Positions 3,671-56,127 of a stretch of 64,000 bases of DNA are shown piece after piece (position 1 is the stretch's first letter; each line of letters begins with the position of its first letter). Position numbers and translations under genes: made by a program. The notes beneath the pieces were generated by a model. That model had not been told where the DNA came from, did not search any database, and saw only the letters and a program-made list of their open reading frames with translations. This DNA is from Octopus bimaculoides (Eukaryota), in contig NC_069000.1 of the NCBI RefSeq assembly GCF_001194135.2, positions 7,869,087-7,933,086 of the forward strand, given 5' to 3'.

Positions 3671-4350
3671 TCACAGAATTATGTGCATCTAGTGTTATTT
3701 TAGCTGCTATAGTTAACTAGTAAAACAAAGGACATGTACCCCAAAACAGTGAACATGTAGCACAAAATGGTGAACATGTAGCCCAAAATAAACAAGAGCC
3801 ATTGGATGGCTTCATTAATGATGGAACAGAACAGAAAAGAGGACATAATTTTGCAAAATAATCTTGATTCAGATCAATGATTATAAAATGGTCGCTTGAA
3901 TATGAAATACACACACATACACCAAATCTGCAACACATACAGCAATCATATACAAACACACAGACAAGCAAATATCTGAATGTACATACACATATAATAT
4001 GTAAATGTCTATATATAGATGTATGCATGCATATATATATATTTATATATACATAAATAAATACACATACATATATATACATACATATATATTACACACA
4101 CACACAAACATATATATATATACATATATATATTTATATATATATATATACATATATATANNNNNNNNNNNNNNNNNNNNNNNNNNNNNNNNNNNNNNNN
4201 NNNNNNNNNNNNNNNNNNNNNNNNNNNNNNNNNNNNNNNNNNNNNATATATATATACATATTATATATATACATATATGCATGTATATATGTATGAGGGG
4301 GTGTGTGTGTTTGTATATACATATTTATATACATATATACACACACAGAT

Positions 4351-6450: not shown

Positions 6451-6766
6451 TATACTGTTTCACTCAGACCTTCAGATCCGCAGCAGCAGTAGCATTGTCA
6501 CAATCAGCATCATCATCATCAACATCAGTATTGTCATTATGATCTTCGTACCCTCCCACCCTGCAATCACCACCACCACTACCGCCGCCACCACCACCAC
6601 CNNNNNNNNNNACTGCCGCCGCCGCCACCACCATCACCACCACCACCTGAATTATCGCCTGGTTGGTCATAGATGGAACACCTTAATCACAGGCTTCAAG
6701 GATCAGGGCTGCCCTATGGCTAAGCAACAACAACATCAAAAACAGTGGTGGTGCTGCTGTTGCTGT

Positions 6767-7457: not shown

Positions 7458-7762
7458 GATGTGAGATGGTTAAATAGAGGTAAATATTTGAGTTTGAAAT
7501 AAGGAATCATTATGGAAAAGGAGGAGATATTCCCTATCACAAGGCTTTGGTTAGACCGAGACTATAGTAGAAGACATTTGTCCAAGGTGCCACATAATGG
7601 GACTGAACCTAGAACCACTTAGTTGAGAAGCAAGCTTCTTACCACACAGCCATGTCTGCACCTATATAGTAGACCAGCCACCAACTGAGCTACTTCAGCT
7701 TGATTAAATCGAGCCATTCTAGTAAGACCTTATTTAGAAAGAGAGAAATAGGTGAAACTTAC

Positions 7763-14104: not shown

Positions 14105-14975
14105 AACAAGCTGGCAGAATTGTAAGCACATCAGGCAAAATGCTTGGCAGTTTTTCACCCATCTTCACGTTCTGAGTTCCAATTCTACTGAGGTCAACTT
14201 TACTTTTCATCTTTACCTTTTCCAATTCCACTGAGGTCGACTTTACCTTTTGGAATCAATAAAATAGAACGAGTTGAACACTGAGGCCTATGTAATTGAC
14301 TTACTCCCCTCTCCTGAAATTGCTGGCTTTGTGCCAAAATTTGAAATCATTATTATTGAAGAGATACAAGGTGGCAAGTTGGTAGAATCATAAGCACGCT
14401 GAGAAAAATGCTTAATGGCATTTCATCCATCTTAAAACGCATCTATACATACATACATATATATACACATATATATATATGTATATACANNNNNNNNNNN
14501 NNNNNNNNNNNNNNTAAACTTATTTGGGAATGGATGTGTCACGTTCAATTAAATAAGTTCATAATATGATATCATCATCATCATTATCATCATTTAATGT
14601 CTGCTTTCCATGCTAGCATGGGTTGGACGATTTGACTGAGGACTGGCGAACCAGATGGCTGCACCAGGCTCCAATCTGATCTGGCAGAGTTTCTACAGCT
14701 GGATGCCTTTCCTAATGCCAACCACTCCGAGAGTGTAGTGGGTGCTTTCACGTGCCACCGGCATGAAGGCCAGTCAGCCGATACTGGCAACGGCCGCTCT
14801 CAAGCGGTATTTTGTCTGCTGTTACATTCTGAGTTCAAATTCCACCGAGGTTGACTTTGCTTTTCATCCTTTCTGGGTCGATAAATTAAGTACCAGTTGC
14901 GTACTGGGGATCGATCTAATTGATTGGTCCCCTCCCCCAAAATTTCAGGCCTTATGCCTAGAGTAGAAAAGAATG
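14105..14975. mobile_element. Cluster of family B SINEs (+) with a family A SINE (-, 14571-14790) among them
   Basis: B copies at about 14105-14345, 14370-14430 and 14795-14975; A copy begins with a (CAT)n tail. Confidence 0.75.
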
Positions 14976-27354: not shown

Positions 27355-27770
27355 NNNNNNNNNNNNNNNNNNNNNNNNNNNNNNNNNNNNNNNNNNNNNN
27401 NNNNNNNNNNNNNNNNNNNNNNNNNNNNNNNNNNNNNNNNNNNNNNNNNNNNNNNNNNNNNNNNNNNNNNNNNNNNNNNNNNNNNNNNNNNNNNNNNNNN
27501 NNNNNNNNNNNNNNNNATATATATATGTATATATATATGTATAATCTTTTACTTGTTTCAGTCATTTGACTGTGGTCATGCTGGAGCACTGCCATTAGTC
27601 GAACAATTCGACCCCAGGGCTTATTCTTTGTAAGCCTAGGACTTATTCTATTGGTCTCTTTTGTTGAGCCGTTAAGTGGGGAGGACATAAACACACCAGC
27701 ATCAGTTATTAAGCAATGGTGGAGGGACAAATACATACACAAATAACAAATACATACATACACACATACG

Positions 27771-31659: not shown

Positions 31660-32020
31660 GTGACTGTGTGGCAAGAAGCTTGCTTCCCAACCACATGGTT
31701 CTGGGTTCAGTCCCGCTCCTTGGTAACATGGGCAAGAGTCTTCTACTATAGCTTCAAGCTGACCAAAACCTTGTGAGCGGATTTGGTAGATGGAAACTGA
31801 AAGAAGCCAGTTGTGTGTGTGTGTATGCCATTGTGTCTGTCCCCCACCACGAATTGATAACCCCGTAATTTAGTAGTTCAGCAAAAGAGACTGATAGAGA
31901 ATAAGTACTAGGCTTAAAAAAAAAAAAAAAGCCCTGGGGTCAGTTTTTCTGACTAAAACCCTTCAAGGCAGTGTCCCAACATACCTGCAGTCAAATGACT
32001 GAAACAAGTAAAAGAATATG
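31660..32020 (+). mobile_element. SINE family C (ggctgtgtggtaagaagcttgcttcccaaccacatgg head, ...gactgaaacaagtaaaaga tail)
   Basis: A/B-box-like head; related pieces at 7545-7660 (-), 27545-27870 (-), 43125-43310 (+) and 47147-47310 (+). Confidence 0.75.
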
Positions 32021-32718: not shown

Positions 32719-33017
32719 NNNNNNNNNNNNNNNNNNNNNNNNNNNNNNNNNNNNNNNNNNNNNNNNNNNNNNNNNNNNNNNNNNNNNNNNNNNNNNNNNN
32801 NNNNNNNNNNNNNNNNNNNNNNNNNNNNNNNNNNNNNNNNNNNNNNNNNNNNNNNNNNNNNNNNNNNNNNNNNNNNNNNNNNNNNNNNNNNNNNNNNNNN
32901 NNNNNNNNNNNNNNNNNNNNNNNNNNNNNNNNNNNNNNNNNNNNNNNNNNNNNNNNNNNNNNNNNNNNNNNNNNNNNNNNNNNNNNNNNNNNNNNNNNNN
33001 NNNNNNNNNNNNNNNNN

Positions 33018-34728: not shown

Positions 34729-35279
34729 NNNNNNNNNNNNNNNNNNNNNNNNNNNNNNNNNNNNNNNNNNNNNNNNNNNNNNNNNNNNNNNNNNNNNNNN
34801 NNNNNNNNNNNNNNNNNNNNNNNNNNNNNNNNNNNNNNNNNNNNNNNNNNNNNNNNNNNNNNNNNNNNNNNNNNNNNNNNNNNNNNNNNNNNNNNNNNNN
34901 NNNNGATAATTCGGAAAAAAAAAACAACAAAAAAACAAACGATACATTATTTCTAAAATTTTAAGTGCTGTCACTAAAACAAATTAAAAATCTGAAAGAA
35001 AAATATACTAAAAAACAAACTTAATCTTAACAAAATCTCTTGACATTTAACTGTTATAATTCGCCTAAACATGAAGACTACTGATAACAGTCCGAGAATG
35101 TGAAATCTCAATATTTCGAAGATATAAAATCGAAAATTATCAAAAAATAAGTTTTAACAAATAAATACTAGAAACGTTGGTTGCATTCTTGTCGAACTCC
35201 CAACTGTCTTGAAGGATTGTATTTTGGTGGTCTTTCTTGTCTTCCATACTTTTCAGACGGTTGTTATGCATTTCCACTA

Positions 35280-35845: not shown

Positions 35846-36592
35846 TTAGTTACCGAGGAAGGAAAAAAGGGTAACAGAAAGGACGAGTAAGAAAAGGTGG
35901 AGAAAGATGTAAGGCAAAGGTCTGATGGTAGAACCAATTAGTTCTTCACCGCCAAGATGTTTCGATTGTGGTACATAATGATTATTCAACACTTGACGAA
36001 TGTCTCCGACCATTTTTAGCAGACCCACAGAAATATTCTCATCAGGTAGGAAATGTTGCCCGGCCTTTTCGGTAATTTCCTTGATTAGTTCCAGTGTAAG
36101 AACCTTGCGTGCCGTTTTACCACTGTAGGTCAGTAAAGTATTGTCATCTCGAGAATAGAATAGAATGATTCCTTCCTCGCATCGTTCTTCGTTGAACGAC
36201 CAACGTTGGTCGAGCGAAGAGACAAAATTAATGGCATTGTTCAGTATCGCAATTTGGCTGGTATTGCTGCCTGTCTCGATCTTCTTGGCCAAAATAACTG
36301 AAGTATAGTAGCCTCCAGAGTTGTTCTCACACACCCAGGCACTGCAAGGGCATAGCGTATACTTAACGTTCATTTCTTCCAGCACCAAATTTAGAATGTC
36401 TTTTGCGTTGTTGTCCAATAAACCGTCCGGATCGCACAACCATTCTGGTTTGTTTTGTTTACACAGGACATATTGATTTCTCGGGTGAGGGTAGTTGTCC
36501 GCTCGCCAAACTGGGATGTCTGCAGATAAGAATGTAGGAAGCAGGATCAGGTAAATTCCAAGATGGGCCAGCAGCATCGTAGAGTGTGGCAT
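35846..36592 (-). CDS. MOLO1 (modulator of levamisole receptor-1)/TPM-domain family protein, 248 aa, single coding exon
   Basis: Signal-peptide-like N-terminus; W-x4-YP-x-P...C...W-x-CDPDGLL motif, CPC and later Cys typical of the MOLO1 family; C-terminal hydrophobic tail; ATG in gagccATG context. Confidence 0.8.
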   Translation of the reverse strand: MPHSTMLLAHLGIYLILLPTFLSADIPVWRADNYPHPRNQYVLCKQNKPEWLCDPDGLLDNNAKDILNLVLEEMNVKYTLCPCSAWVCENNSGGYYTSVILAKKIETGSNTSQIAILNNAINFVSSLDQRWSFNEERCEEGIILFYSRDDNTLLTYSGKTARKVLTLELIKEITEKAGQHFLPDENISVGLLKMVGDIRQVLNNHYVPQSKHLGGEELIGSTIRPLPYIFLHLFLLVLSVTLFSFLGN

Positions 36593-39874: not shown

Positions 39875-40921
39875 NNNNNNNNNNNNNNNNNNNNNNNNNN
39901 NNNNNNNNNNNNNNNNNNNNNNNNNNNNNNNNNNNNNNNNNNNNNNNNNNNNNNNNNNNNNNNNNNNNNNNNNNNNNNNNNNNNNNNNNNNNNNNNNNNN
40001 NNNNNNNNNNNNNNNNNNNNNNNNNNNNNNNNNNNNNNNNNNNNNNNNNNNNNNNNNNNNNNNNNNNNNNNNNNNNNNNNNNNNNNNNNNNNNNNNNNNN
40101 NNNNNNNNNNNNNNNNNNNNNNNNNNNNNNNNNNNNNNNNNNNNNNNNNNNNNNNNNNNNNNNNNNNNNNNNNNNNNNNNNNNNNNNNNNNNNNNNNNNN
40201 NNNNNNNNNNNNNNNNNNNNNNNNNNNNNNNNNNNNNNNNNNNNNNNNNNNNNNNNNNNNNNNNNNNNNNNNNNNNNNNNNNNNNNNNNNNNNNNNNNNN
40301 NNNNNNNNNNNNNNNNNNNNNNNNNNNNNNNNNNNNNNNNNNNNNNNNNNNNNNNNNNNNNNNNNNATATATATATATATATATATATAATTCAAAGAAT
40401 ATATATACATGTATACACACATATATGTACATACTTACATCTACATGTGTATATATATGCATATCAGGGTACAGGACGTTAGAATAATGAACTACAGACA
40501 ACGGAACGAACACATAGGAAAACGGAAAGCCACTTGGAATATTCCTTCATCAGCTGCCTCTATTCTAACCTGACGTTTCGAAGATAAGACAGAACGTACT
40601 CTAGAATAGTCTCTTCCTGAGTAGTGGATCAACCCACTACACAGAGGATTCCAAGGTGGCAAACACAAACCAAGACAGGAAAAATTGGACAGTGAAAACA
40701 ACATTCAAAAGCCGTACGGCTTTTATATATACACACACATCATCATCATCGTTTAACGTCCGCTTTCCATGCTAGCATGGGTTGGACGATTTGACTGAGG
40801 ACTGGTGAAACCGGATGGCAACACCAGCCTCCAATCTGATTTGACAGAGTTTCTACAGCTGGATGCCCTTCCTAACGCCAACCACTCAGAGAGTGTAGTG
40901 GGTGCTTTTACGTGTCACCTG

Positions 40922-43775: not shown

Positions 43776-45397
43776 TTAAAGTGACTGATATCAGTAACAT
43801 ACAAAATATTTGTTGCATTAAAAAATATATAATATAGAATTCAACAAGGCTCTAAATACTCCTTACTCTTGATTTAAGGAAGTATTTCTAGATCAGTGCA
43901 TTTGCAGGTTAGTAACTGAAAGATGTGTTAGTTATAGAGTGTGTGACTTAGTGATAAGGATGTTCAACTCATGATTATAAGATCAGGATCAGCAGTAGCT
44001 TGTGTATAGGAACTGCAGAACCCCCTAATTCTTTTTTATACTTGTACATTATATAACCCTCAATGTCAGTAGCTATCCCCTAGTTTATGAAAAAAAAAAA
44101 TAATACAAAAATCCTTGTATAGAACTGTGCCTTTTGCAGTTCTAGCAACGTGGAGTTTGGCTGTTGCGTGTATGCTCACATATCTAAGATAGGAAGCTGC
44201 ACGTTAGGGAGAGAGGGCACAGTGGTTCATGCAGTGCCGACCCCGGTGTGCTGGTGAAAGGTAGCGTTTCTTTTTGATTGTGTGTGTTGTGTTTAAAAAC
44301 GTGTTTATATTCTTGAATGTGATAAAGTGTAGACTTAGTTTATTATCCTGCTTCCAGCTACGTTGTCGCTGCCAGGATTTAAAATAAAAGGGCAGATTTT
44401 CTCACCTTATTTTGTGATTTAGGGGGTGATTTTTGAAAAATAAGGGAGAGTTTGCGGCAGTATTCAGTGAACCAATTAAACACACTACCCGGCAGTGGCT
44501 AAAATGCAAACCGATCAAGTTTATGTATAAATATTCTATTTATATGTTTGTTTCCTTTTACACAATATTAAAACAACAGCTGAACATTTTCTGAAGCAGT
44601 ACCCCTACTAATTTTATCTACAAGTTGCCACTGGTCAGGATTGATTCCCAGCAGTGTATTGTGTTCTTGAGCAAGGCACTTCATTTCATGTTGCTCTAGT
44701 CTAAAAACTGAGTTTTACCTGTAATTCAAAGGGTCAATCTAGTCCCATTCTGTGTCATACAGAACCTCCTTGAGAACTGCATTATATGTACTCATATATG
44801 TGAAGTGCTCAGCCTCTTGCACATTAATTTCATAAGCAGGCTGTTTCATTGATCAAATTCAATTGGAATACTCATACTACAGGTATTGATGTGTCATTGA
44901 ACAAAGGTGAAATATATAAAAAAAAAACAAAAAAAAAAAACGAACAGAACTGAAAGATAAATCAATTACTGTTAACAGTAGAAAAATTAGTTGGAAAATG
45001 AAACTAATAATCGACTTTCAAAACAAAGTTTAGGATATCACAATCACTAGCTTTTTTCAATATGGTGATAAAAATATAAAAAAGTGTCTGTGTGTCATTG
45101 TGAGTAAAAGAAATTGAAAATATATGTTTGTGGTAAAATCGGAATCTGACTAGCAGTCAGTTACACTATATTCATACCATAACCAAATATATTAGACATT
45201 TTAAGCCTGTATTATTATTATATTTCGGCTTACAAATTAAAAAAAATAATAAATAATGGAGTTCTCGTTTCAACACACCATATAACAGCATTGTTTTTTT
45301 TATATATATATATTTTTTGGAATTTTCCAAAAACTTTTGCGCATTTGTGTNNNNNNNNNNAAAAAAAAAAATGGTATTTAGTTCATCAATTTCACAA

Positions 45398-45497: not shown

Positions 45498-46697
45498 TCA
45501 ACGGAGGGTGGAGTTCAAATACCAACTCTTTTCTAAGGCAAACTCGGTTATTGGGTACTGCGATACATCAGGATATTTCTTGGTTATATTTCCTCTAACC
45601 TTTATCAACATATCTGTAATAGACATGTGCTTAGAACACTCACCGAATACACTGACAATTTCTTTGATGAATACAGAGCCTTCTTTAGGGTCCCTAAGGG
45701 AAACATATCCTGGTGATGTTGAATAAGCGATGACTACATCGGAGCGAATAGCAGCTTGGTGATAAGATTCCTTCGAAATTTCATCTCGACATGCCTGGAT
45801 AATGAATAACTTAGGTTTGCCAACCAAAGCAGCACAGTTTTGGGCATTGAAGTAAGCAAGTACATCGTCTAGATTAATGACATTTCCATCAACTCCTACC
45901 AACTGATTTATGTTTTTGCCATGTGTAAGAATGGCAACAACGCAACAATTAGCTTTTTCTAATAATGACATCTGAGAAAATCCCCATAAAGCAAGTTTCA
46001 TATCGATAGCACCTACATTTTCTTTTTTTTCACAAACGAAATCTAATTCCGAGAATAAATTCATCAAATCAATCATATCTTTTTTAGATCCATTGCGGTT
46101 GAAAGAGGCATCTTTAAATGTATCGTTGTTTATAACATAAAACAAACCTTTTGGTTCTGACGACATCTTATAACACGCCAAATGACCGACGGTTGGACCA
46201 CTTTCCTCGCTATTTTCATAACTGGGATCATTCTCTTCATAAAAATAACTGCAGAGTGACTGAGTTTCCTCTTGGGGCGAAAAAGTTATTTCATAATTGT
46301 TTTCATCAAAGTTTTCCGTTGGAGAAATCGGTGAGTTTGATAGTGTCAAATTAGATATACTTTCGTTAATACGTTTATATTCATTTGTGCTCAGTTTGGG
46401 TCTATTTGTTTCTATAAGTTTGTAGACACATTTCGCTATATTATCGGCAATATGTTTCTGTTCGGAGTAAGAGAGACACTGTAAGAATGATACAAAGTGT
46501 TTGTCAGAGCGACGAGGAAGTATATCAATTAATTCTCTAATCTGGGCAGTTCTGTGAGGTTTGGAATCAATTATTTCAATTTGACTAATCGGAAACACGT
46601 TCTCTTCTATGAGAAAATCTCTCAAAGTCGAATATTCGATATTGCGCACGAGAAACACTCGATTTTTGATCAGTGCTTCCATATAAATATGGTTCAT
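45498..46697 (-). CDS. CARD-containing initiator-type caspase (caspase-2/9-like architecture), 399 aa from the first ATG, uninterrupted ORF
   Basis: N-terminal CARD-like helices; p20 with RNGS, THG and QACRD; p10 with YSTSPGYVSLRD and GSVFI. The ORF-track start at 46724 is TTG; first ATG is at 46697. A pyrimidine tract plus AG at 46727-46726 suggests an upstream exon. Confidence 0.9.
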   Translation of the reverse strand: MNHIYMEALIKNRVFLVRNIEYSTLRDFLIEENVFPISQIEIIDSKPHRTAQIRELIDILPRRSDKHFVSFLQCLSYSEQKHIADNIAKCVYKLIETNRPKLSTNEYKRINESISNLTLSNSPISPTENFDENNYEITFSPQEETQSLCSYFYEENDPSYENSEESGPTVGHLACYKMSSEPKGLFYVINNDTFKDASFNRNGSKKDMIDLMNLFSELDFVCEKKENVGAIDMKLALWGFSQMSLLEKANCCVVAILTHGKNINQLVGVDGNVINLDDVLAYFNAQNCAALVGKPKLFIIQACRDEISKESYHQAAIRSDVVIAYSTSPGYVSLRDPKEGSVFIKEIVSVFGECSKHMSITDMLIKVRGNITKKYPDVSQYPITEFALEKSWYLNSTLR

Positions 46698-47391
46698 GGT
46701 TGTTGTTTCATTTTCTAACGTCAAACTAGATTAAAAAAAGGTAACTTATTCGTAAACACCACTTCACGGTTCCTCATGGAAGAATAGAGAGTATTCTTTA
46801 GGGTCCCAGACGGGAACATTTGATATTTTTTTTATCACTCAGTGGAATTTTAATTTAGCGTGACGAAATCTTTTGCTTCGTACTTAAACATACTGTACCA
46901 ATGATAATAGTAATTCCGGGAATTTCATTTCATATAACACCGCTTTACGTCATGATCCACTTTATTCGCTTAGCTCATTGCATGACTTTTAGGGTTTTCC
47001 CCCGAAATATTTATAAGTCACAATGTGACTTAAATATATAATGATATAAGTTGGTATGTGACTATACAGGTGATTTAAATTATAGTAAGTACTCTGATTA
47101 TAGGCCAGTGAATTGCTAGCGCCTACATTAAATGCCTAGTGACTTTTAGCTGTGTGGTAAGCAGTTTGCCTCCCAGCCACAAGGTTCTTGGTTCAGCCCC
47201 ACTGCGTGGCACTTAGGGTAAGTGTCTTTTCCTAGACTCGGGCCAAGCAAAAGCTTTGTGAATTAATTTGGTTAATGGAAACTGAAAGAAGACCGTTATA
47301 TATATATAATTAATAATATCGAAGGGTAATTAGGAATATTAGAAATTTCTACTAGCATGTAAAAATTTAGTCCATAGACTATATATAATTC

Positions 47392-47653: not shown

Positions 47654-50600
47654 ATATATTGGCAATATATCATATATCCGAATAAGAAGCACATTCTTAA
47701 GTGTAGAGCAGTAAAGTATTAAAGCAATAAAGTTAAAGTCTGGTCATAGACTGATCAATGGTTTCGCATCCACGAAAGCCGCAGGCCAAGGAGATAGCCG
47801 TATTTTCCAAATTGGCTCGTCTAGGGGAGACAACCCGTCCTCGCCAACGCCGGAACTTTTATTCACCGATGATCTTTTGTCAAATTGACCGTAACAATTT
47901 ACTATCTCGGAGAATTGTTATTTAAAAACTCTTTGTAGCTTAGTTACGGAAGAATTAGATAATACATGTAAACATTGACCATACAATTTTTATGTCGTAA
48001 CTCTCTACGACAGTCTTCTTTTGACTGATAAAAATATACTGTAAATATTAAATGTACGTAAATAAATTAATTTAGTAAATGATTTCTTTATCTTCATTGC
48101 TTCAACCTATTGATGAAATTTATTTCTGTAACTATTGAAACTGTTATTATAACGTTCAGCGTGCTGGTGTATATAACTCACCATAGCATTTATGTTGTCT
48201 GAGCTAGAATTTATGTATGGTGATAAATACATATAATTAAGTTATAAGTGACGAATTTATCACCACAGGTTCTTGCTAAATAAATAAATAAATATATTAA
48301 TTATATTTTCAAGTCGAACACGTTATAAACAGATTAAATTATCTAATTGTTATAGGTAATTTTCCACCATTATAAATTGCCACTCGTCATAATNNNNNNN
48401 NNNNNNNNNNNNNNNNNNNNNNNNNNNNNNNNNNNNNNNNNNNNNNNNNNNNNNNNNNNNNNNNNNNNNNNNNNNNNNNNNNNNNNNNNNNNNNNNNNNN
48501 NNNNNNNNNNNNNNNNNNNNNNNNNNNNNNNNNNNNNNNNNNNNNNNNNNNNNNNNNNNNNNNNNNNNNNNNNNNNNNNNNNNNNNNNNNNNNNNNNNNN
48601 NNNNNNNNNNNNNNNNNNNNNNNNNNNNNNNNNNNNNNNNNNNNNNNNNNNNNNNNNNNNNNNNNNNNNNNNNNNNNNNNNNNNNNNNNNNNNNNNNNNN
48701 NNNNNNNNNNNNNNNNNNNNNNNNNNNNNNNNNNNNNNNNNNNNNNNNNNNNNNNNNNNNNNNNNNNNNNNNNNNNNNNNNNNNNNNNNNNNNNNNNNNN
48801 NNNNNNNNNNNNNNNNNNNNNNNNNNNNNNNNNNNNNNNNNNNNNNNNNNNNNNNNNNNNNNNNNNNNNNNNNNNNNNNNNNNNNNNNNNNNNNNNNNNN
48901 NATATATATATATCATCACACACACACAGAGCTCCTTCAAGCAATTTACCTGAAGATCCAGTGGGTGCCTATAGGTAAACTCAGAATAGCAAGAAGATGG
49001 TTTGACCAAAGTAATACAAACATATATAGATACAGGGTGCAGGGAATAAATTGCTATGAAATTGCTGCTCCTGTGGTGCAATTTGAAAGCGTTACTAGTA
49101 CTGTTATGAAATATCCACAGGGGCTGTAATTTCATAACCTTACAAGTAACGGTCTTCTATGTTCCTCTCTCAGCCAAGAGGTCTTTGTCTTGAGCGCTTA
49201 TGGGTGCTGGTGTCACATAAAAAGCACCTATGCTGGTGGCACATAAGAGTGTCTAAGCTAGTGCCACATAAAATCACCTGTGTTGGTGTCATCTAAAAGT
49301 GCCCATGCCGGTGCCACGTGAAAGCATCCATACCAGTTCCATGTAAAAGTGTCTGTTCTGGTGCCGTGCACCCAGTTCACTTTGAGAAGAGCTTGCTATT
49401 AGGTAGGGCATCCAGCCACAGAAACGATGCCAAAACAGGCAATTGGAGCCTGGTGCAGCTCTCTGGCTGGCCAGCTCCTGTCAAACTGTCCAACCCTTGC
49501 CAGCATGGAAAACAGACGTTAAAAGATGATGATGATGATCTATCAGTTTGAAAATGAATCTATAATACTGGATGCTTTGGTTAAAATACACACATACACA
49601 TGTATGTATGTGTGCGCGCGCGTGTTCGTCCAATTTGAGAAACCCTGCCAACTTGTTATCTAGCCATGCAACGCTGTCATAGCGCCATTTTCTAAGTTAT
49701 AGAGTTGCATAGCAACACCCTATTAGATTAATTTGAAACGACCTAATTATATAGGGTGTATAAAGCTTCAGAGTTTTAGAAAAAGTTTCACTGAATATCT
49801 ATCTTTCTCTTTAAATTTAAATTTAGAATCGATTGATTTTTAACATCAAGAAATATCAAATTTGTTTGTAGTCTGCTAGAATCATAGAAGTGAGAACCAT
49901 ACATCCAGAATTACCTCCCTTGCCTCTCTGTTACCGCCATTTTCTAATTGTAGAAAATATTTCTTCGAGTCAAATCACAAATCAATTCTTAAATAACTTC
50001 ATCACTTCATGTTTATAATTATAAACAAGAACTTTCTCTTTCGTTGCTTCTCGAATCACTTCGCTGGTGTAACACTGACTGATGCTAAAGCTAGAATAAC
50101 CTCCCTTATTCTAATGCCATCGCCATATTTCTTTCCAAATCTGCGACTTTCGTGCGATGCCGCCGAATTTTACATGTTGCATCCTTTATAAGTATCATGT
50201 TGACACATATCAGGTATTATACATCGTTTCATTATTTAATAACTACTTATACATTTCAGTACATATGAAATAATCTTTTTTTCTTTTGTATGTATGAAAT
50301 AATGTTTAATATGGTCTTCTTTTGATTTGTGTTTACACTCTTTCGTAAATTTAACACAAAATGTTGATGTTTACTTTTTTCAAGTCACTATATATTTTGT
50401 GTTTTTATGTTCCAGCTAATTAGAATTTATTGATACCAACTTTAGAAATTTAGATGGATATTCTGTAGCGACGAACGAAAGTAATCTAATGTTTATATGA
50501 TCAACCGAACATTACTGATATGAAAAATTAAATATTTTTTGTTTCTCTTCTTAATCCAAGTCTACCTAGATGTACCATTGATAAAACTCACGTATTTGAC

Positions 50601-52535: not shown

Positions 52536-54569
52536 ATGGCTGAAAACTTCCAATGTAAATATTGTAATGAAATATTTACATCTTTGGCTGATCTTTCACA
52601 GCATAAAAAAATTCATACTTTCTCGTGTGACATTTGTTCCACTGAATTTTTGTACAAATCTTTATTGTCAACACATCTGAGGACACACCTGAAGAAGCCT
52701 TTCAAATGTGCAATATGTTGTCGCAACTTTGCCAAATCAGTGCAGTTCAATGCACACATGAAAACACATGAGACTGTCCCTTGTTATAAATGCGGTTTCT
52801 GTAGCCTCACTTTCACCACAGCTAGCAATATGCTTTGCCATATTGAAGAACATCTGCGTACCCGGTATCAGTGTGGACTCTGCTCCAAAGGGTTTGAGTT
52901 ACTTGATGACCTTTCTGAACACTTGCGACTGCATTTCAAAATAAAATCTCTTGGACAACGCAGTAAAAGACCAACTGTTGTTAGCAACAGTAAAGAAACT
53001 GTATCGGACCCAACCTCTACGTCAACTGTTGCTGATGTCTCTAAGACGTGTGATCCTAATGAAGATAAAAATGGTGATATCACAACTCTGTCTAAGGATT
53101 GCAACGAAGCAGCTAAGCGCAGTGCTAAAGTGCACCAGTGTGAATACTGCAATGCCACATTTAAACGTAAACATCTGTTGACCACTCATCGGAGAATCCA
53201 TACTGGTGACCGGCCATATAAGTGTAGTTATTGTGATAAGAACTTCAGTCGTTATTATGCAATGGTGGCCCATGAAAGACTCCACACTGGAGAACGTCCG
53301 TATAAATGTAACCAATGTGATAAGTCATTTACTGTCTCTAGTCACTTAAATGTTCATTTCAAACTAAAACATATTGGTTTAAGGCCTCATAAATGTGACA
53401 GATGTGACAAAGCTTACCGTAGTCCAGGAGAGCTTCGCATTCACATCCGTTCTCACACTGGGGACCGACCTTTTTCATGTGAGGTCTGTGGGAAAAACTA
53501 TGCAACCCAATGTTCACTGACCATTCATAAAAAGACGCACTCACCAGACAAAAAACCTTACATTTGTGAATTGTGTGGTCTCTCTTATAAGCAGCCGAGC
53601 AGTTTAAGTGTCCATATGCGTACTTCACATGGAAGTGACAAAGAGAAGAAACATCACTGTGAATTCTGTCAAAAGAGCTTTCATATTGCCGGAAGCCTGC
53701 TGCGGCACCGGCGCATCCACACAAACGAAAGACCTTATTTATGTGATCTTTGTGATAAGTCATTTCGGGAATCTTCAGCTCTCAAAACCCACAAAAGGCG
53801 ACAACATCTTGGTGAACGTCCATATCATTGTGATTGTTGCGACAAGTGTTTCTGTACCCAAACGGATCTTACTAGACACAAAAAAACCCACAAAGGTCTT
53901 GCTGTTCTTTCATCTCTGGCAGTTAGTATTGCTGAAAATAAGCTGAAAGATGTACCTACTTCTCAGTCTCTCTATTCAAAACCTACTGAGGAAATCCAAT
54001 TAACTACTTCACAGCTACCAGTAACCATAGCTCAGCCCGTTGTGTCTCCTCTGACTGTGTCTATCCCACAACAAACAATGTCTCCTTTGACTGTTTCTGT
54101 TACACAAGAAGATCCATCTTCCCTAGCAGTACCCATCACTTCTGTATCGAGCTCTCTAGAAGAAATGTATGTGGTACCTCAAACCCCAAATGAAATAACT
54201 TTGTCTCATGATATTTCATTACACCCCGAAGAAACTTGTGAAATAACTGCTTCTCACGCAGTGCAAATATCTGAACAGTTACAAGATGTGTCGGCTGATG
54301 TGTCAATGCCCACTGTCCAGGATGTGACCTTATCACATGACTCTATGGTGGTTGTCACTGACCAGCAGTCACCTGCTATTGGTTCAATGACATTAACATT
54401 ACCTGTCTCCTCTATCCATCAAACTCTTCCCTTACAAAGTGATGTGGCCCTACATTTTTCACCTCAAATGTCTCTGACCATCCCTAACAGCGTTACTTCG
54501 TCACATTCTGTTGTACCAACCACTTCTCAGACAGTAGCTCTCTCACAAGTGGTCCACTCCCTTACGTAG
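52536..54569 (+). CDS. C2H2 zinc-finger protein, 677 aa, 14 fingers (5+9) plus S/T/P/Q-rich C-terminal tail, single coding exon
   Basis: 14 C-x2-C-x12-H-x3/4-H units counted, with TGE/DRP-type linkers; aaaATGG start; putative acceptor tattttcag ending 52139; AATAAA at 55169-55174. Confidence 0.95.
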   Translation: MAENFQCKYCNEIFTSLADLSQHKKIHTFSCDICSTEFLYKSLLSTHLRTHLKKPFKCAICCRNFAKSVQFNAHMKTHETVPCYKCGFCSLTFTTASNMLCHIEEHLRTRYQCGLCSKGFELLDDLSEHLRLHFKIKSLGQRSKRPTVVSNSKETVSDPTSTSTVADVSKTCDPNEDKNGDITTLSKDCNEAAKRSAKVHQCEYCNATFKRKHLLTTHRRIHTGDRPYKCSYCDKNFSRYYAMVAHERLHTGERPYKCNQCDKSFTVSSHLNVHFKLKHIGLRPHKCDRCDKAYRSPGELRIHIRSHTGDRPFSCEVCGKNYATQCSLTIHKKTHSPDKKPYICELCGLSYKQPSSLSVHMRTSHGSDKEKKHHCEFCQKSFHIAGSLLRHRRIHTNERPYLCDLCDKSFRESSALKTHKRRQHLGERPYHCDCCDKCFCTQTDLTRHKKTHKGLAVLSSLAVSIAENKLKDVPTSQSLYSKPTEEIQLTTSQLPVTIAQPVVSPLTVSIPQQTMSPLTVSVTQEDPSSLAVPITSVSSSLEEMYVVPQTPNEITLSHDISLHPEETCEITASHAVQISEQLQDVSADVSMPTVQDVTLSHDSMVVVTDQQSPAIGSMTLTLPVSSIHQTLPLQSDVALHFSPQMSLTIPNSVTSSHSVVPTTSQTVALSQVVHSLT

Positions 54570-55917
54570 TGTGGAAACGAGTTATAAATCTTGTAATTTT
54601 GGCTACTGGATGTTTAGCAGGTACTCCAAATGTCATTCAAGCCTGACAAGTATTGTAATGACAAACCTGACGTAGATATCTTGTTTTGATGAAAAACCTG
54701 ACCTTGATGTCGGTAACATGACACTATTAATAATAACTGTTACCATGGTGATAGTTACATCAGTCTACTTAGCATTGACTCTCTATTTAGCGTTGATTCT
54801 ACTTAGCAGTGACTCTCAACTCCAATCTGGGTCAGCTTAAAAACCTTCTGCATTAATTTTGGATTTGTAAATCAATCCAGTTGTTGTCGGTGGGTCAAGA
54901 AGAGATCATTAAATAAGGAGAGAGGAAATGATACCTTCAATGAGTTTGTTGTTATAAATGAATGTAAGTTGTTCTCATTAATTAGTTTTTCTGTTAATTA
55001 AAGAACACAAGAAATCCATTCAGCATCTAATTAAACCCACTCCCCTCACTTCAAAAATCACGTTCAGTTATGTTCAGTTTGTGGAAACAAGGAAGAATTC
55101 CAATTAATTTATTTATTTCAATTTCTATTTTCAATCATTGAACTTTACATAAATGTTCAATTTTGAGAAATAAACAGCAATTTTATATTTTTGACATCAT
55201 GTTTTATCTCATTTCTTTCTTGATTTGGTTTAATCTTGGTTGTTTTTTTTTTAATGTTGGTCAGTTATTTTTAGTGTTTTGACAGAAAAAAAGTCATTGT
55301 AAAATCGTTTTTTAATGTAAGCATGCCCAAACAAGTCGAATGCTTACACAGAGTAGGTTTTACAGCCACATCATCCAAACCGACTGGGTGAAACTGGGCT
55401 TAGCTGCTAGTATATATATATATATATATATATATATTTTATATATTGATATATTGATATATATATTTATGTTTATATATATTTATATATATATATAGAT
55501 AGATGTCNNNNNNNNNNNNNNNNNNNNNNNNNNNNNNNNNNNNNNNNNNNNNNNNNNNNNNNNNNNNNNNNNNNNNNNNNNNNNNNNNNNNNNNNNNNNN
55601 NNNNNNNNNNNNNNNNNNNNNNNNNNNNNNNNNNNNNNNNNNNNNNNNNNNNNNNNNNNNNNNNNNNNNNNNNNNNNNNNNNNNNNNNNNNNNNNNNNNN
55701 NNNNNNNNNNNNNNNCTCTCTCTCTATATATATATATATATATTTATATGTATTTATATATGTTTATTTATCTATTTATAATGCACTAATACCTTGACAT
55801 CCTTGTTACTTATTTGCTTTTTATTCACCTAACTTCATGCTGTGCATACAATACCGGACTGACTTGGTGCCTCAACCTAAGTGCCTAATTCAACTGAATC
55901 TGAATTATTTCTATATG

Positions 55918-56127
55918 GGTGCAGGAGTGGCTGTGTGGTAAGTAGCTTGCTTACCAACCACATGGTAAAAGCACCCACTACACTCTCAGAGTGGTTGGCA
56001 TTAGGAAGGGCATCCAGCTGTAGAAACTCTGCCAGATCAGATTGGAGCCTGGTGCAGCCATCTGGTTCGCCAGTCCTCAGTCAAACCGTCCAACCCATGC
56101 TAGCATGGAAGGCGGACGTTAAACGAA

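Follow-up and report, generated by a model that had tools for sequence, protein, structure and literature searches.

Caspases are textbook zymogen proteases, which are switched on by a cut in the linker between their subunits, and the need for this cut has so far been argued mainly from engineered mutants. The present work deals with a gene of Octopus bimaculoides encoding a caspase with a CARD prodomain, designated here P0001. The gene lies in a stretch of 64,000 nucleotides (contig NC_069000.1, positions 7,869,087 to 7,933,086 of the forward strand), which is called below the window and whose numbering is used throughout. An earlier reading of the letters of this DNA (the original prediction) had described an atypical single-exon CARD-caspase. 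It was found that the protein retains the catalytic residues of caspases, has lost about half of the intersubunit linker in comparison with caspase-3 and bears a glutamate in the last strand of the dimer interface.

Gene Model and Domain Organization

The open reading frame (ORF) of P0001 runs on the minus strand from an ATG at 46697 to a stop codon at 45498-45500 and encodes 399 amino acids without interruption; its genomic place is Octopus bimaculoides CM046620.1:7914584-7915783 (GCA_001194135.2). The protein is identical to the deposited O. bimaculoides gene product, and the deposited gene model consists of the same 1200 bases in one exon. Together with the Pfam matches, this confirms the single-exon ORF with CARD and caspase domains that had been predicted; the observation is no product of chance. 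The N-terminus MNHIY or MDEIY is common to P0001, its orthologues and bivalve caspase-2. The features of the gene are collected in Table 1.

Table 1. Features of the CARD-caspase gene of O. bimaculoides, with residue numbers of P0001.
Feature	Position in the window	Strand	Basis and remarks
Complete single-exon coding sequence (CDS) of CARD-caspase P0001	45498..46697	(-)	ORF list, sequence, deposited gene model; 399 amino acids and stop
CARD, residues 8-87	46437..46676	(-)	PF00619, 46.3 bits, E 4e-12, cut-off 23.9; helices with predicted local distance difference test (pLDDT) 80-90
Acidic Ser-rich spacer from CARD to protease, residues 121-172	46182..46337	(-)	pLDDT <50; probably disordered
Peptidase_C14 caspase domain, residues 187-390	45528..46139	(-)	PF00656, 150 bits, E 1e-43, cut-off 21.4
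RNGS, 201-204; R201 = caspase-3 R64 (P1 pocket)	46086..46097	(-)	Caspase-3 alignment; invariant in family alignment A1
THG, 258-260; catalytic His259 and Gly260 = caspase-3 H121 and G122	45918..45926	(-)	Alignment
QACRD, 301-305; Q301, catalytic C303, R304, D305 replacing Gly	45783..45797	(-)	Alignment
Intersubunit linker EISKESYHQAAIR, 13 residues, 306-318	45744..45782	(-)	Coil in model, pLDDT 76-83
SLRD, 333-336; R335 = caspase-3 R207 (P1 pocket), Leu before it	45690..45701	(-)	Alignment
GSVFI, 340-344; V342 at caspase-3 W214 (S4 subsite wall)	45666..45680	(-)	Alignment
ITEFAL, last beta-strand, dimer interface; E385 = caspase-3 V266, caspase-1 E390	45534..45551	(-)	Alignment

Residue equivalences were established by aligning P0001 to human caspase-3, the sequence of which is identical to PDB 7xn4_A. 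P0001 keeps the residues corresponding to caspase-3 R64, H121, G122, Q161, C163, R164 and R207 and has Asp for G165, Val for W214 and Leu for W206, the last of which had not been noted in the original prediction. The Arg/Gln/Arg pocket for Asp at P1 is complete, being formed by R201, Q301 and R335 (caspase-3 R64, Q161 and R207). The alignment bears out the earlier observations that the catalytic His and Cys and both P1-binding Arg are present and that the motifs are changed to QACRD (D305 for G165) and GSVFI (V342 for W214). No variation was observed in the His-Cys dyad or in the residues of the P1 pocket among the five octopod sequences and the catalytically intact decapodiform members of the family. 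Neither the Cys nor the His, the loss of one or both of which marks a pseudocaspase, is lost in P0001.

The best sequence matches of P0001 in PDB are caspase-9 (93 bits), CED-3 and caspase-2, followed by caspase-7 and caspase-3. An AlphaFold model of residues 162-399, obtained with a 65-sequence alignment, has a pLDDT of 92.4 and a predicted template modelling score (pTM) of 0.90, and Foldseek gave template modelling (TM) scores of 0.83-0.91 to caspase-7, CED-3 and caspase-9 in match lists that mix zymogen and active caspase structures. In the full-length model, a helical CARD is followed by a disordered spacer. The ENFD/ENVD/ENLD motif in this spacer (residues 128-131) is kept in three Octopus-type sequences and is not found in Argonauta. 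P0001 is a true caspase fold with a CARD prodomain and belongs to family C14A; no acidic S1 pocket of the C14B kind (paracaspases and metacaspases) is present, and every match, whether by sequence or by fold, is to C14A.

Intersubunit Linker and Pentapeptide

The linker and the pentapeptide were compared with those of 130 caspase domains belonging to the 119 closest representatives outside the family in a library of 1.84 billion proteins. The distance from the catalytic Cys to the P1 Arg is 32 residues in P0001, 44 in caspase-3 and 68 in caspase-9; in the related domains it is at least 38, and its median is 60. By alignment, the linker comprises 13 residues against 25 in caspase-3; the original prediction had counted about 9 against 21, so its deficit of 12 residues stands and only the boundary has moved. 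The fifth residue of the pentapeptide is Gly in 122 of the 130 domains and D, S or N across the cephalopod family. Neither short linkers (minimum distance 38) nor the loss of this Gly are common among the relatives. The position of W214 is occupied by Trp in 95/130 domains, and all catalytically intact members of the family have V, I or L there; the position of W206 is variable, with Trp in only 45/130 domains and Met in vertebrate caspase-2. The short linker and the lost pentapeptide Gly are unusual among relatives, and the change from GSW to GSV is uncommon, not rare.

Within the family, as judged from its aligned members, the loss of the pentapeptide Gly and of W214 is general and not unique to P0001, and the very short linker is specific to octopods among the catalytically intact proteins. 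Decapodiform linkers are longer, with 38-48 or more residues. Although otherwise variable, those of the decapodiform proteins P0005-P0008 and P0027 contain a conserved motif, MRL(M/E)S(L/F)DLSS, and exactly that segment is missing in octopods; the motif is probably an Asp processing site or a binding motif.

The linker had also been described as free of Asp, which is rare (one of the 130 related domains). This holds for O. bimaculoides only if the pentapeptide D305 is left out, and other octopods have Asp nearby: QACRD-D in O. vulgaris and O. sinensis and ITPD in Argonauta. The aligned octopod linkers indicate that shortness is conserved across octopods and the lack of Asp is not. A conserved non-canonical cleavage site was considered and rejected: Glu-Ser 310-311 aligns with Asp-Thr in Argonauta, but with Gln-Ser in O. 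sinensis. Across octopods, no conserved Asp or Glu site for processing was found in the linker sequences.

DEVDase activity has been measured for an oyster caspase whose pentapeptide is QACRS (PMC11543851), and QACxG is therefore a consensus feature rather than a requirement. Squid CARD-caspases bear QACQP or QACRS (PMC9389742), and "QACRD" was not found in any caspase paper of the open literature searched. Many caspase-2-type proteins of bivalves (P0029, P0174, P0035, P0038 and others) have NACRG, i.e., Asn at the position of caspase-3 Q161. In Pinctada, the ends of tblastn blocks place an apparent exon boundary immediately behind the pentapeptide (about residue 312/313), so the linker seems to be encoded there on a separate exon.

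Glutamate in the Dimer Interface

Not noted in the original prediction, Glu occupies the position of caspase-3 V266 in all 14 family sequences that could be scored and in only 4/85 non-family domains, and R304, the equivalent of caspase-3 R164, is invariant in the family. V266 of caspase-3 corresponds to E390 of caspase-1, which is salt-bridged to R286 (caspase-3 R164) on loop L2, a bridge that stabilises the active site of caspase-1; the V266E substitution makes procaspase-3 active without cleavage of the chain by keeping the linker out of the interface, and dimerised initiator procaspases are already active (PMC2805924). By analogy, this suggests an order of events in which an interface that did not need a linker cut may have come first and the octopod linker may have been lost afterwards.

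Conservation, Selection and Expression

The orthologues of O. vulgaris and O. sinensis are 82% identical to P0001, that of another octopod 75% and that of Argonauta hians 49-54%, and the flanking DNA of O. vulgaris is collinear with the O. bimaculoides locus. The ratio of nonsynonymous to synonymous substitution rates (dN/dS) was calculated according to Nei-Gojobori with 2000 bootstrap replicates. Values of 0.36 (bootstrap 95% confidence interval 0.25-0.53) for O. bimaculoides and O. vulgaris, 0.52 for O. bimaculoides and the third octopod, 0.37 for O. vulgaris and the third octopod and 0.23 for O. bimaculoides and Argonauta were obtained, and in every comparison 0/2000 replicates reached 1. 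The CARD is the most constrained part (0.12-0.27 against 0.22-0.60 in the caspase domain). In comparisons of the three Octopus-type sequences, both dN and dS are higher in the spacer than elsewhere in the protein, although its dN/dS is about the same as that of the caspase domain.

The reading frame has stayed open although Octopus and Argonauta are separated by a dS above 1.3 and differ in about 45% of the amino acids of the caspase domain. At least five genomes or assemblies of octopods, as well as several decapodiform species, carry the full-length ORF intact. The gene is fast-evolving but clearly under purifying selection, with dN/dS far below the value near 1 of a decaying copy, and is not a pseudogene.

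Two sets of Logan contigs were considered as transcripts and set aside. The octopod contigs L005 and L006 are collinear with the genome, end in dispersed repeats and may be genomic, and the decapodiform contigs, from 97 runs, have no splice or poly(A) signature that would separate RNA from DNA. Four Enterobacter hypothetical proteins of 48-51 amino acids are listed in the 90% cluster of the O. vulgaris caspase (P0002); their sequences are unrelated to it, and this is a database clustering artefact, not contamination.

Family and Retroposed Origin

A profile search without a word index returned only four 50%-identity representatives at 439-672 bits, and the next match was at 299 bits. Two clades make up the family, one of octopods and one of the decapodiform type. 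Outside it, the closest proteins are those named Caspase-2 in bivalves (Pinctada, Dreissena and Potamilus) and a CARD-caspase of Haliotis, and Pinctada caspase-2 in turn matches vertebrate caspase-2. In neighbour-joining (NJ) trees, the cephalopod family, with bootstrap support of 286/300, stands on a long branch beside bivalve and gastropod caspase-2; these trees were obtained by distance methods only, and the orthology of the octopod and squid paralogues is taken from them. On this sequence evidence, the family is confined to cephalopods and is probably an intronless branch of the molluscan caspase-2 lineage.

The CDS forms one block in five cephalopod loci, namely those of O. bimaculoides, O. 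vulgaris, O. sinensis and Argonauta and that on the 68-kb contig of P0005, and in three Octopus genomes the gene spans 1200 bases for 399 amino acids. The coding blocks of bivalve caspase-2 number about 7 over 9.7 kb in Pinctada and about 10 over 23 kb in Dreissena. An intronless CDS with multi-exon closest homologues is a mark of a processed retrogene and supports the retroposed origin considered possible earlier; the copy is an old one, since it is shared by five intronless cephalopod loci. The distribution of the family indicates that it most probably originated by retroposition, before the split between octopods and squids.

Such an age would explain why no remnants are visible: in a search for a poly(A) remnant and target-site duplications, only an A/T-rich tract and a 10-N gap were found downstream of the caspase stop. 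A multi-exon caspase-2 parent in cephalopods, looked for with Pinctada caspase-2, gave no match in a search that needs shared 5-residue words.

Several published sequences belong to this family. The O. sinensis orthologue is "OsCasp2", and the Euprymna scolopes protein P0027 (413 amino acids) equals EsCasp2_X2 apart from a 45-residue gap in that model (PMC9389742). The 45 residues absent from EsCasp2_X2 (368 amino acids) take in the region equivalent to R64. EsCasp2_X1 (591 amino acids, with the reported pentapeptide 'QANSV', PMC9389742) looks like a CARD-only frame fused to another protein of the same squid, P0250. In the light of these sequences, both EsCasp2_X1 and EsCasp2_X2 (PMC9389742, supplementary file 3) look like gene-model errors.

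A Squid Pseudocaspase of the Same Family

P0250, a protein of 465 amino acids, was found in Logan contigs of E. scolopes by a search with the second half of EsCasp2_X1. It has a CARD of the family type and a caspase-like domain in which the His-Gly and the P1 Arg region are lost and QVPDN stands for QACRx; its linker has 16 residues. In NJ analysis, P0250 groups with the octopod clade in 245/300 bootstraps, on a long branch. P0250 serves as an internal control: since it lost its catalytic residues, such residues evidently decay in this family when dispensable, and it is the more likely that octopods still use theirs.

Surroundings of the Gene

The 64-kb window was searched for another caspase or CARD, such as a tandem array would give, and none was found; an Rfam scan of the window gave no RNA family. 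A multi-C2H2 zinc-finger protein, present in the deposited annotation, is encoded by an uninterrupted 677-amino-acid ORF at 52536-54569 (+), about 6 kb upstream of the caspase gene and on the opposite strand. A protein with the MOLO1 domain (modulator of levamisole receptor-1; 83.5 bits) is encoded by a single 248-amino-acid ORF at 35846-36592 (-). With the caspase, there are three intronless coding sequences within about 20 kb.

Ten N runs (assembly gaps) are present in the window: 4161-4245, 6602-6611, 14490-14514, 27355-27516, 32719-33017, 34729-34904, 39875-40366, 45351-45360, 48394-48901 and 55508-55715. The 10-N gap at 45351-45360 follows the caspase stop codon at a distance of about 140 bases. 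The 508-N gap at 48394-48901 lies upstream of the ATG, about 1.7 kb away, and leaves part of the likely promoter or 5' untranslated region unsequenced; it is adjoined by a tandem repeat at 49205-49326 (period 25/50 bp, about 4.8 copies, 64-74% matches).

A dispersed repeat, possibly like a short interspersed nuclear element, lies just upstream of the caspase gene at 47032-47205. Further copies are at 31661-31722, 7598-7652 and 55928-55962, and the repeat recurs at several places of the O. vulgaris locus and in octopod contig L005, at its 5' end.

Proposed Mode of Activation

From the identity, conservation and structure of the gene, which were observed directly, we infer how P0001 may be activated, what it would cut and where it would be recruited. 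In our opinion, the chances are about even that P0001 is a CARD-recruited, Asp-specific caspase activated by dimerisation without cleavage of the linker. The CARD would bring the protein to an oligomeric platform, and dimerisation driven by proximity would order the active site while the linker remained uncut. At the centre of the dimer interface, E385 would pair with R304, like E390 with R286 in caspase-1, and would keep the linker out of the interface, as V266E does in procaspase-3. P0001 would cut its substrates after Asp, with preferences at P2-P4 unlike those of caspase-3, because both Trp residues of the groove and a part of loop L4 are missing. The stronger claim that octopods carry a natural, obligately uncleaved single-chain caspase, in which the Glu-Arg interface pair replaces chain cleavage, is somewhat doubtful and is put forward as tentative.

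Two possibilities had been left by the original prediction, a single-chain protease of altered specificity and a CARD-recruited decoy or regulator. The protease is now favoured over the decoy because the catalytic and P1 residues are invariant, the dN/dS of the caspase domain is 0.22-0.60, the same residues have decayed in P0250 and Glu is invariant at the V266 position.

Several considerations weigh against activation without cleavage. The linker of wild-type caspase-3 was modelled as just long enough for the loop bundle in an uncleaved active state (PMC2805924), and a linker 12 residues shorter may preclude the same active geometry. The change G165D is two residues from the catalytic Cys, and the AlphaFold models of P0001 are monomers. 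The stronger constraint on the CARD than on the protease domain also fits a scaffold or regulator role. The lineage with short linkers may be drifting toward a non-catalytic role, as P0250 suggests by its own short linker and its grouping with octopods. Apaf-1 is absent from molluscs (PMC10959488), and cephalopods (squid and octopus) were reported to lack CRADD (PMC9389742), so that neither would be available for recruiting a CARD-caspase, as RAIDD/CRADD is for caspase-2 in the PIDDosome. Among run-level contigs, none encoding the O. bimaculoides, O. vulgaris or O. sinensis protein was found, a result that is uninformative, as none was found for the neighbouring MOLO1 gene used as a control.

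The same features may be read in another way, namely, that P0001 is a regulator or decoy, recruited by its CARD, in which the truncated linker and G165D lock the caspase fold in a zymogen-like state with little or no activity, and which acts as a scaffold or competitor on a CARD platform, like c-FLIP(L), caspase-12 and CARD-only proteins. A linker shorter than in all the 130 related domains, the lost Gly of QACxG and the lowest dN/dS being in the CARD agree with this, as does the existence of P0250, a true pseudocaspase with a short linker that joins the octopods in 82% of NJ bootstraps. However, the catalytic and P1-pocket residues have remained invariant in octopods over a dS above 1.3 and a domain divergence of about 45%, whereas known decoys (c-FLIP) and P0250 itself have lost their catalytic residues, and the invariant Glu at the V266 position points to an active conformation. 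Moreover, there is apparently no other octopod family member to regulate, which is weak negative evidence. A regulator or decoy of this kind is considered unlikely, although deserving of serious attention.

Less credit can be given to conventional processing, in which the short linker would still be cut by P0001 itself or by an upstream protease to give the usual p20/p10 heterotetramer. Cuts after D305/D306, after E310 (Glu cleavage of the Dronc type) or after the ITPD of Argonauta may be imagined: O. vulgaris and O. sinensis have QACRD-D, the Argonauta linker has ITPD-T, O. bimaculoides, O. vulgaris and the third octopod share Glu-Ser at the aligned position, and caspases do cleave after Glu at low efficiency. 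However, no acidic position is conserved, E310 being Gln in O. sinensis, and a cut 2-3 residues past the catalytic Cys would probably destabilise loop L2. The pieces L2 and L2' would have only about 7-8 residues each after the cut, which is presumably too short for the canonical loop bundle. Processing of this type is thus improbable.

Finally, a non-functional retrocopy, i.e., an untranscribed or decaying processed pseudogene with an open frame by chance, might be suspected from the intronless CDS and from the fact that no Octopus transcript support was found, but it is effectively refuted, with hardly any probability left, by dN/dS (0.23-0.52, with no replicate at or above 1) and by the intact ORFs of five or more octopod genomes or assemblies and several decapodiforms, as well as by the synteny kept with O. 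vulgaris, by the identity of squid P0027 with EsCasp2_X2 of the E. scolopes resources (PMC9389742) and by the decapodiform members in 97 sequencing runs.

Significance

The gene itself is already known, being annotated, and its O. sinensis orthologue is included in a published tree (PMC9389742). No mention of the minimal linker, of the family-wide Glu at the interface, of the intronless origin or of the squid relative that is a pseudocaspase was found in the open literature searched. With all the catalytic residues, almost no linker and an interface residue of the V266E type, P0001 offers a natural evolutionary test of cleavage-independent activation. If the uncleaved single chain is real, its activation would be purely conformational and reversible and would be free of controls that depend on a cleavage-generated N-terminus, e.g., IAP binding, and the protein would be the naturally evolved counterpart of the engineered V266E procaspase-3.

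The finding bears on the initiation of cell death in cephalopods, from which both Apaf-1 and CRADD are reported to be absent. P0001 and the dead squid protein P0250 make a matched pair for studying the change from an enzyme to a pseudoenzyme. If P0001 should be inactive, it would be an unusual decoy that has retained the full catalytic set for a very long time.

Comparison with Known Caspases and Related Proteins

Caspase-2 has the same order of domains as P0001, an N-terminal CARD with a motif of the LPRR/LPKRGP type and a C14 domain, and in both the position of W206 is not Trp (Met in vertebrate caspase-2). The C-terminal motif LxKxWYLNP and a short L4 loop are common to P0001 and bivalve caspase-2. 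In contrast, P0001 is intronless and bivalve caspase-2 has about 7-10 coding exons; the pentapeptide is QACRD instead of QACRG or NACRG; W214 is lost; the linker has 13 residues instead of about 45-55; and Glu stands where bivalve caspase-2 has Ser or Gln at the V266 position. The family also forms a long branch, with a large gap in score (672 to 299 bits).

Divergent CARD-caspases of O. bimaculoides, Y1 and Y2, were placed outside the main clade of CARD-caspases (Krasovec et al. 2023, PMC10959488). P0001 could be one of these two lophotrochozoan caspases Y, although the NJ trees place it next to molluscan caspase-2.

Caspase-9 resembles P0001 in its CARD prodomain, in being the best PDB match and in an identical L3 motif, RDPKxGS. 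For caspase-9 and other initiators, activity on dimerisation is described, with cleavage not strictly needed (PMC2805924). Unlike P0001, caspase-9 has a long linker with Asp sites (68 residues from Cys to Arg), and it was reported to be specific to deuterostomes (PMC10959488).

The glutamate in the interface strand and the Arg beside the catalytic Cys are shared by P0001 with procaspase-3 V266E and caspase-1. The former is an engineered protein, whereas P0001 is natural and has a much shorter linker. The insertion of the Arg391 type found in caspase-1 is absent in P0001. E124 of caspase-3, which neutralises R164, is not kept either, and P0001 has K261-N262 there.

In c-FLIP(L) and P0250, as in P0001, a death-fold domain is followed by a caspase-like domain with an unusual linker; they have lost the catalytic Cys and His, whereas P0001 keeps both, together with the whole P1 pocket. 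MALT1 and metacaspases work as single chains without being cleaved; dimerisation or a change of conformation activates them, and a death-fold domain serves for their recruitment. Their acidic pocket accepts Arg or Lys at P1, whereas P0001 has the Arg/Gln/Arg pocket of caspases. P0001 may work like MALT1 and metacaspases, but it is not a member of their group.

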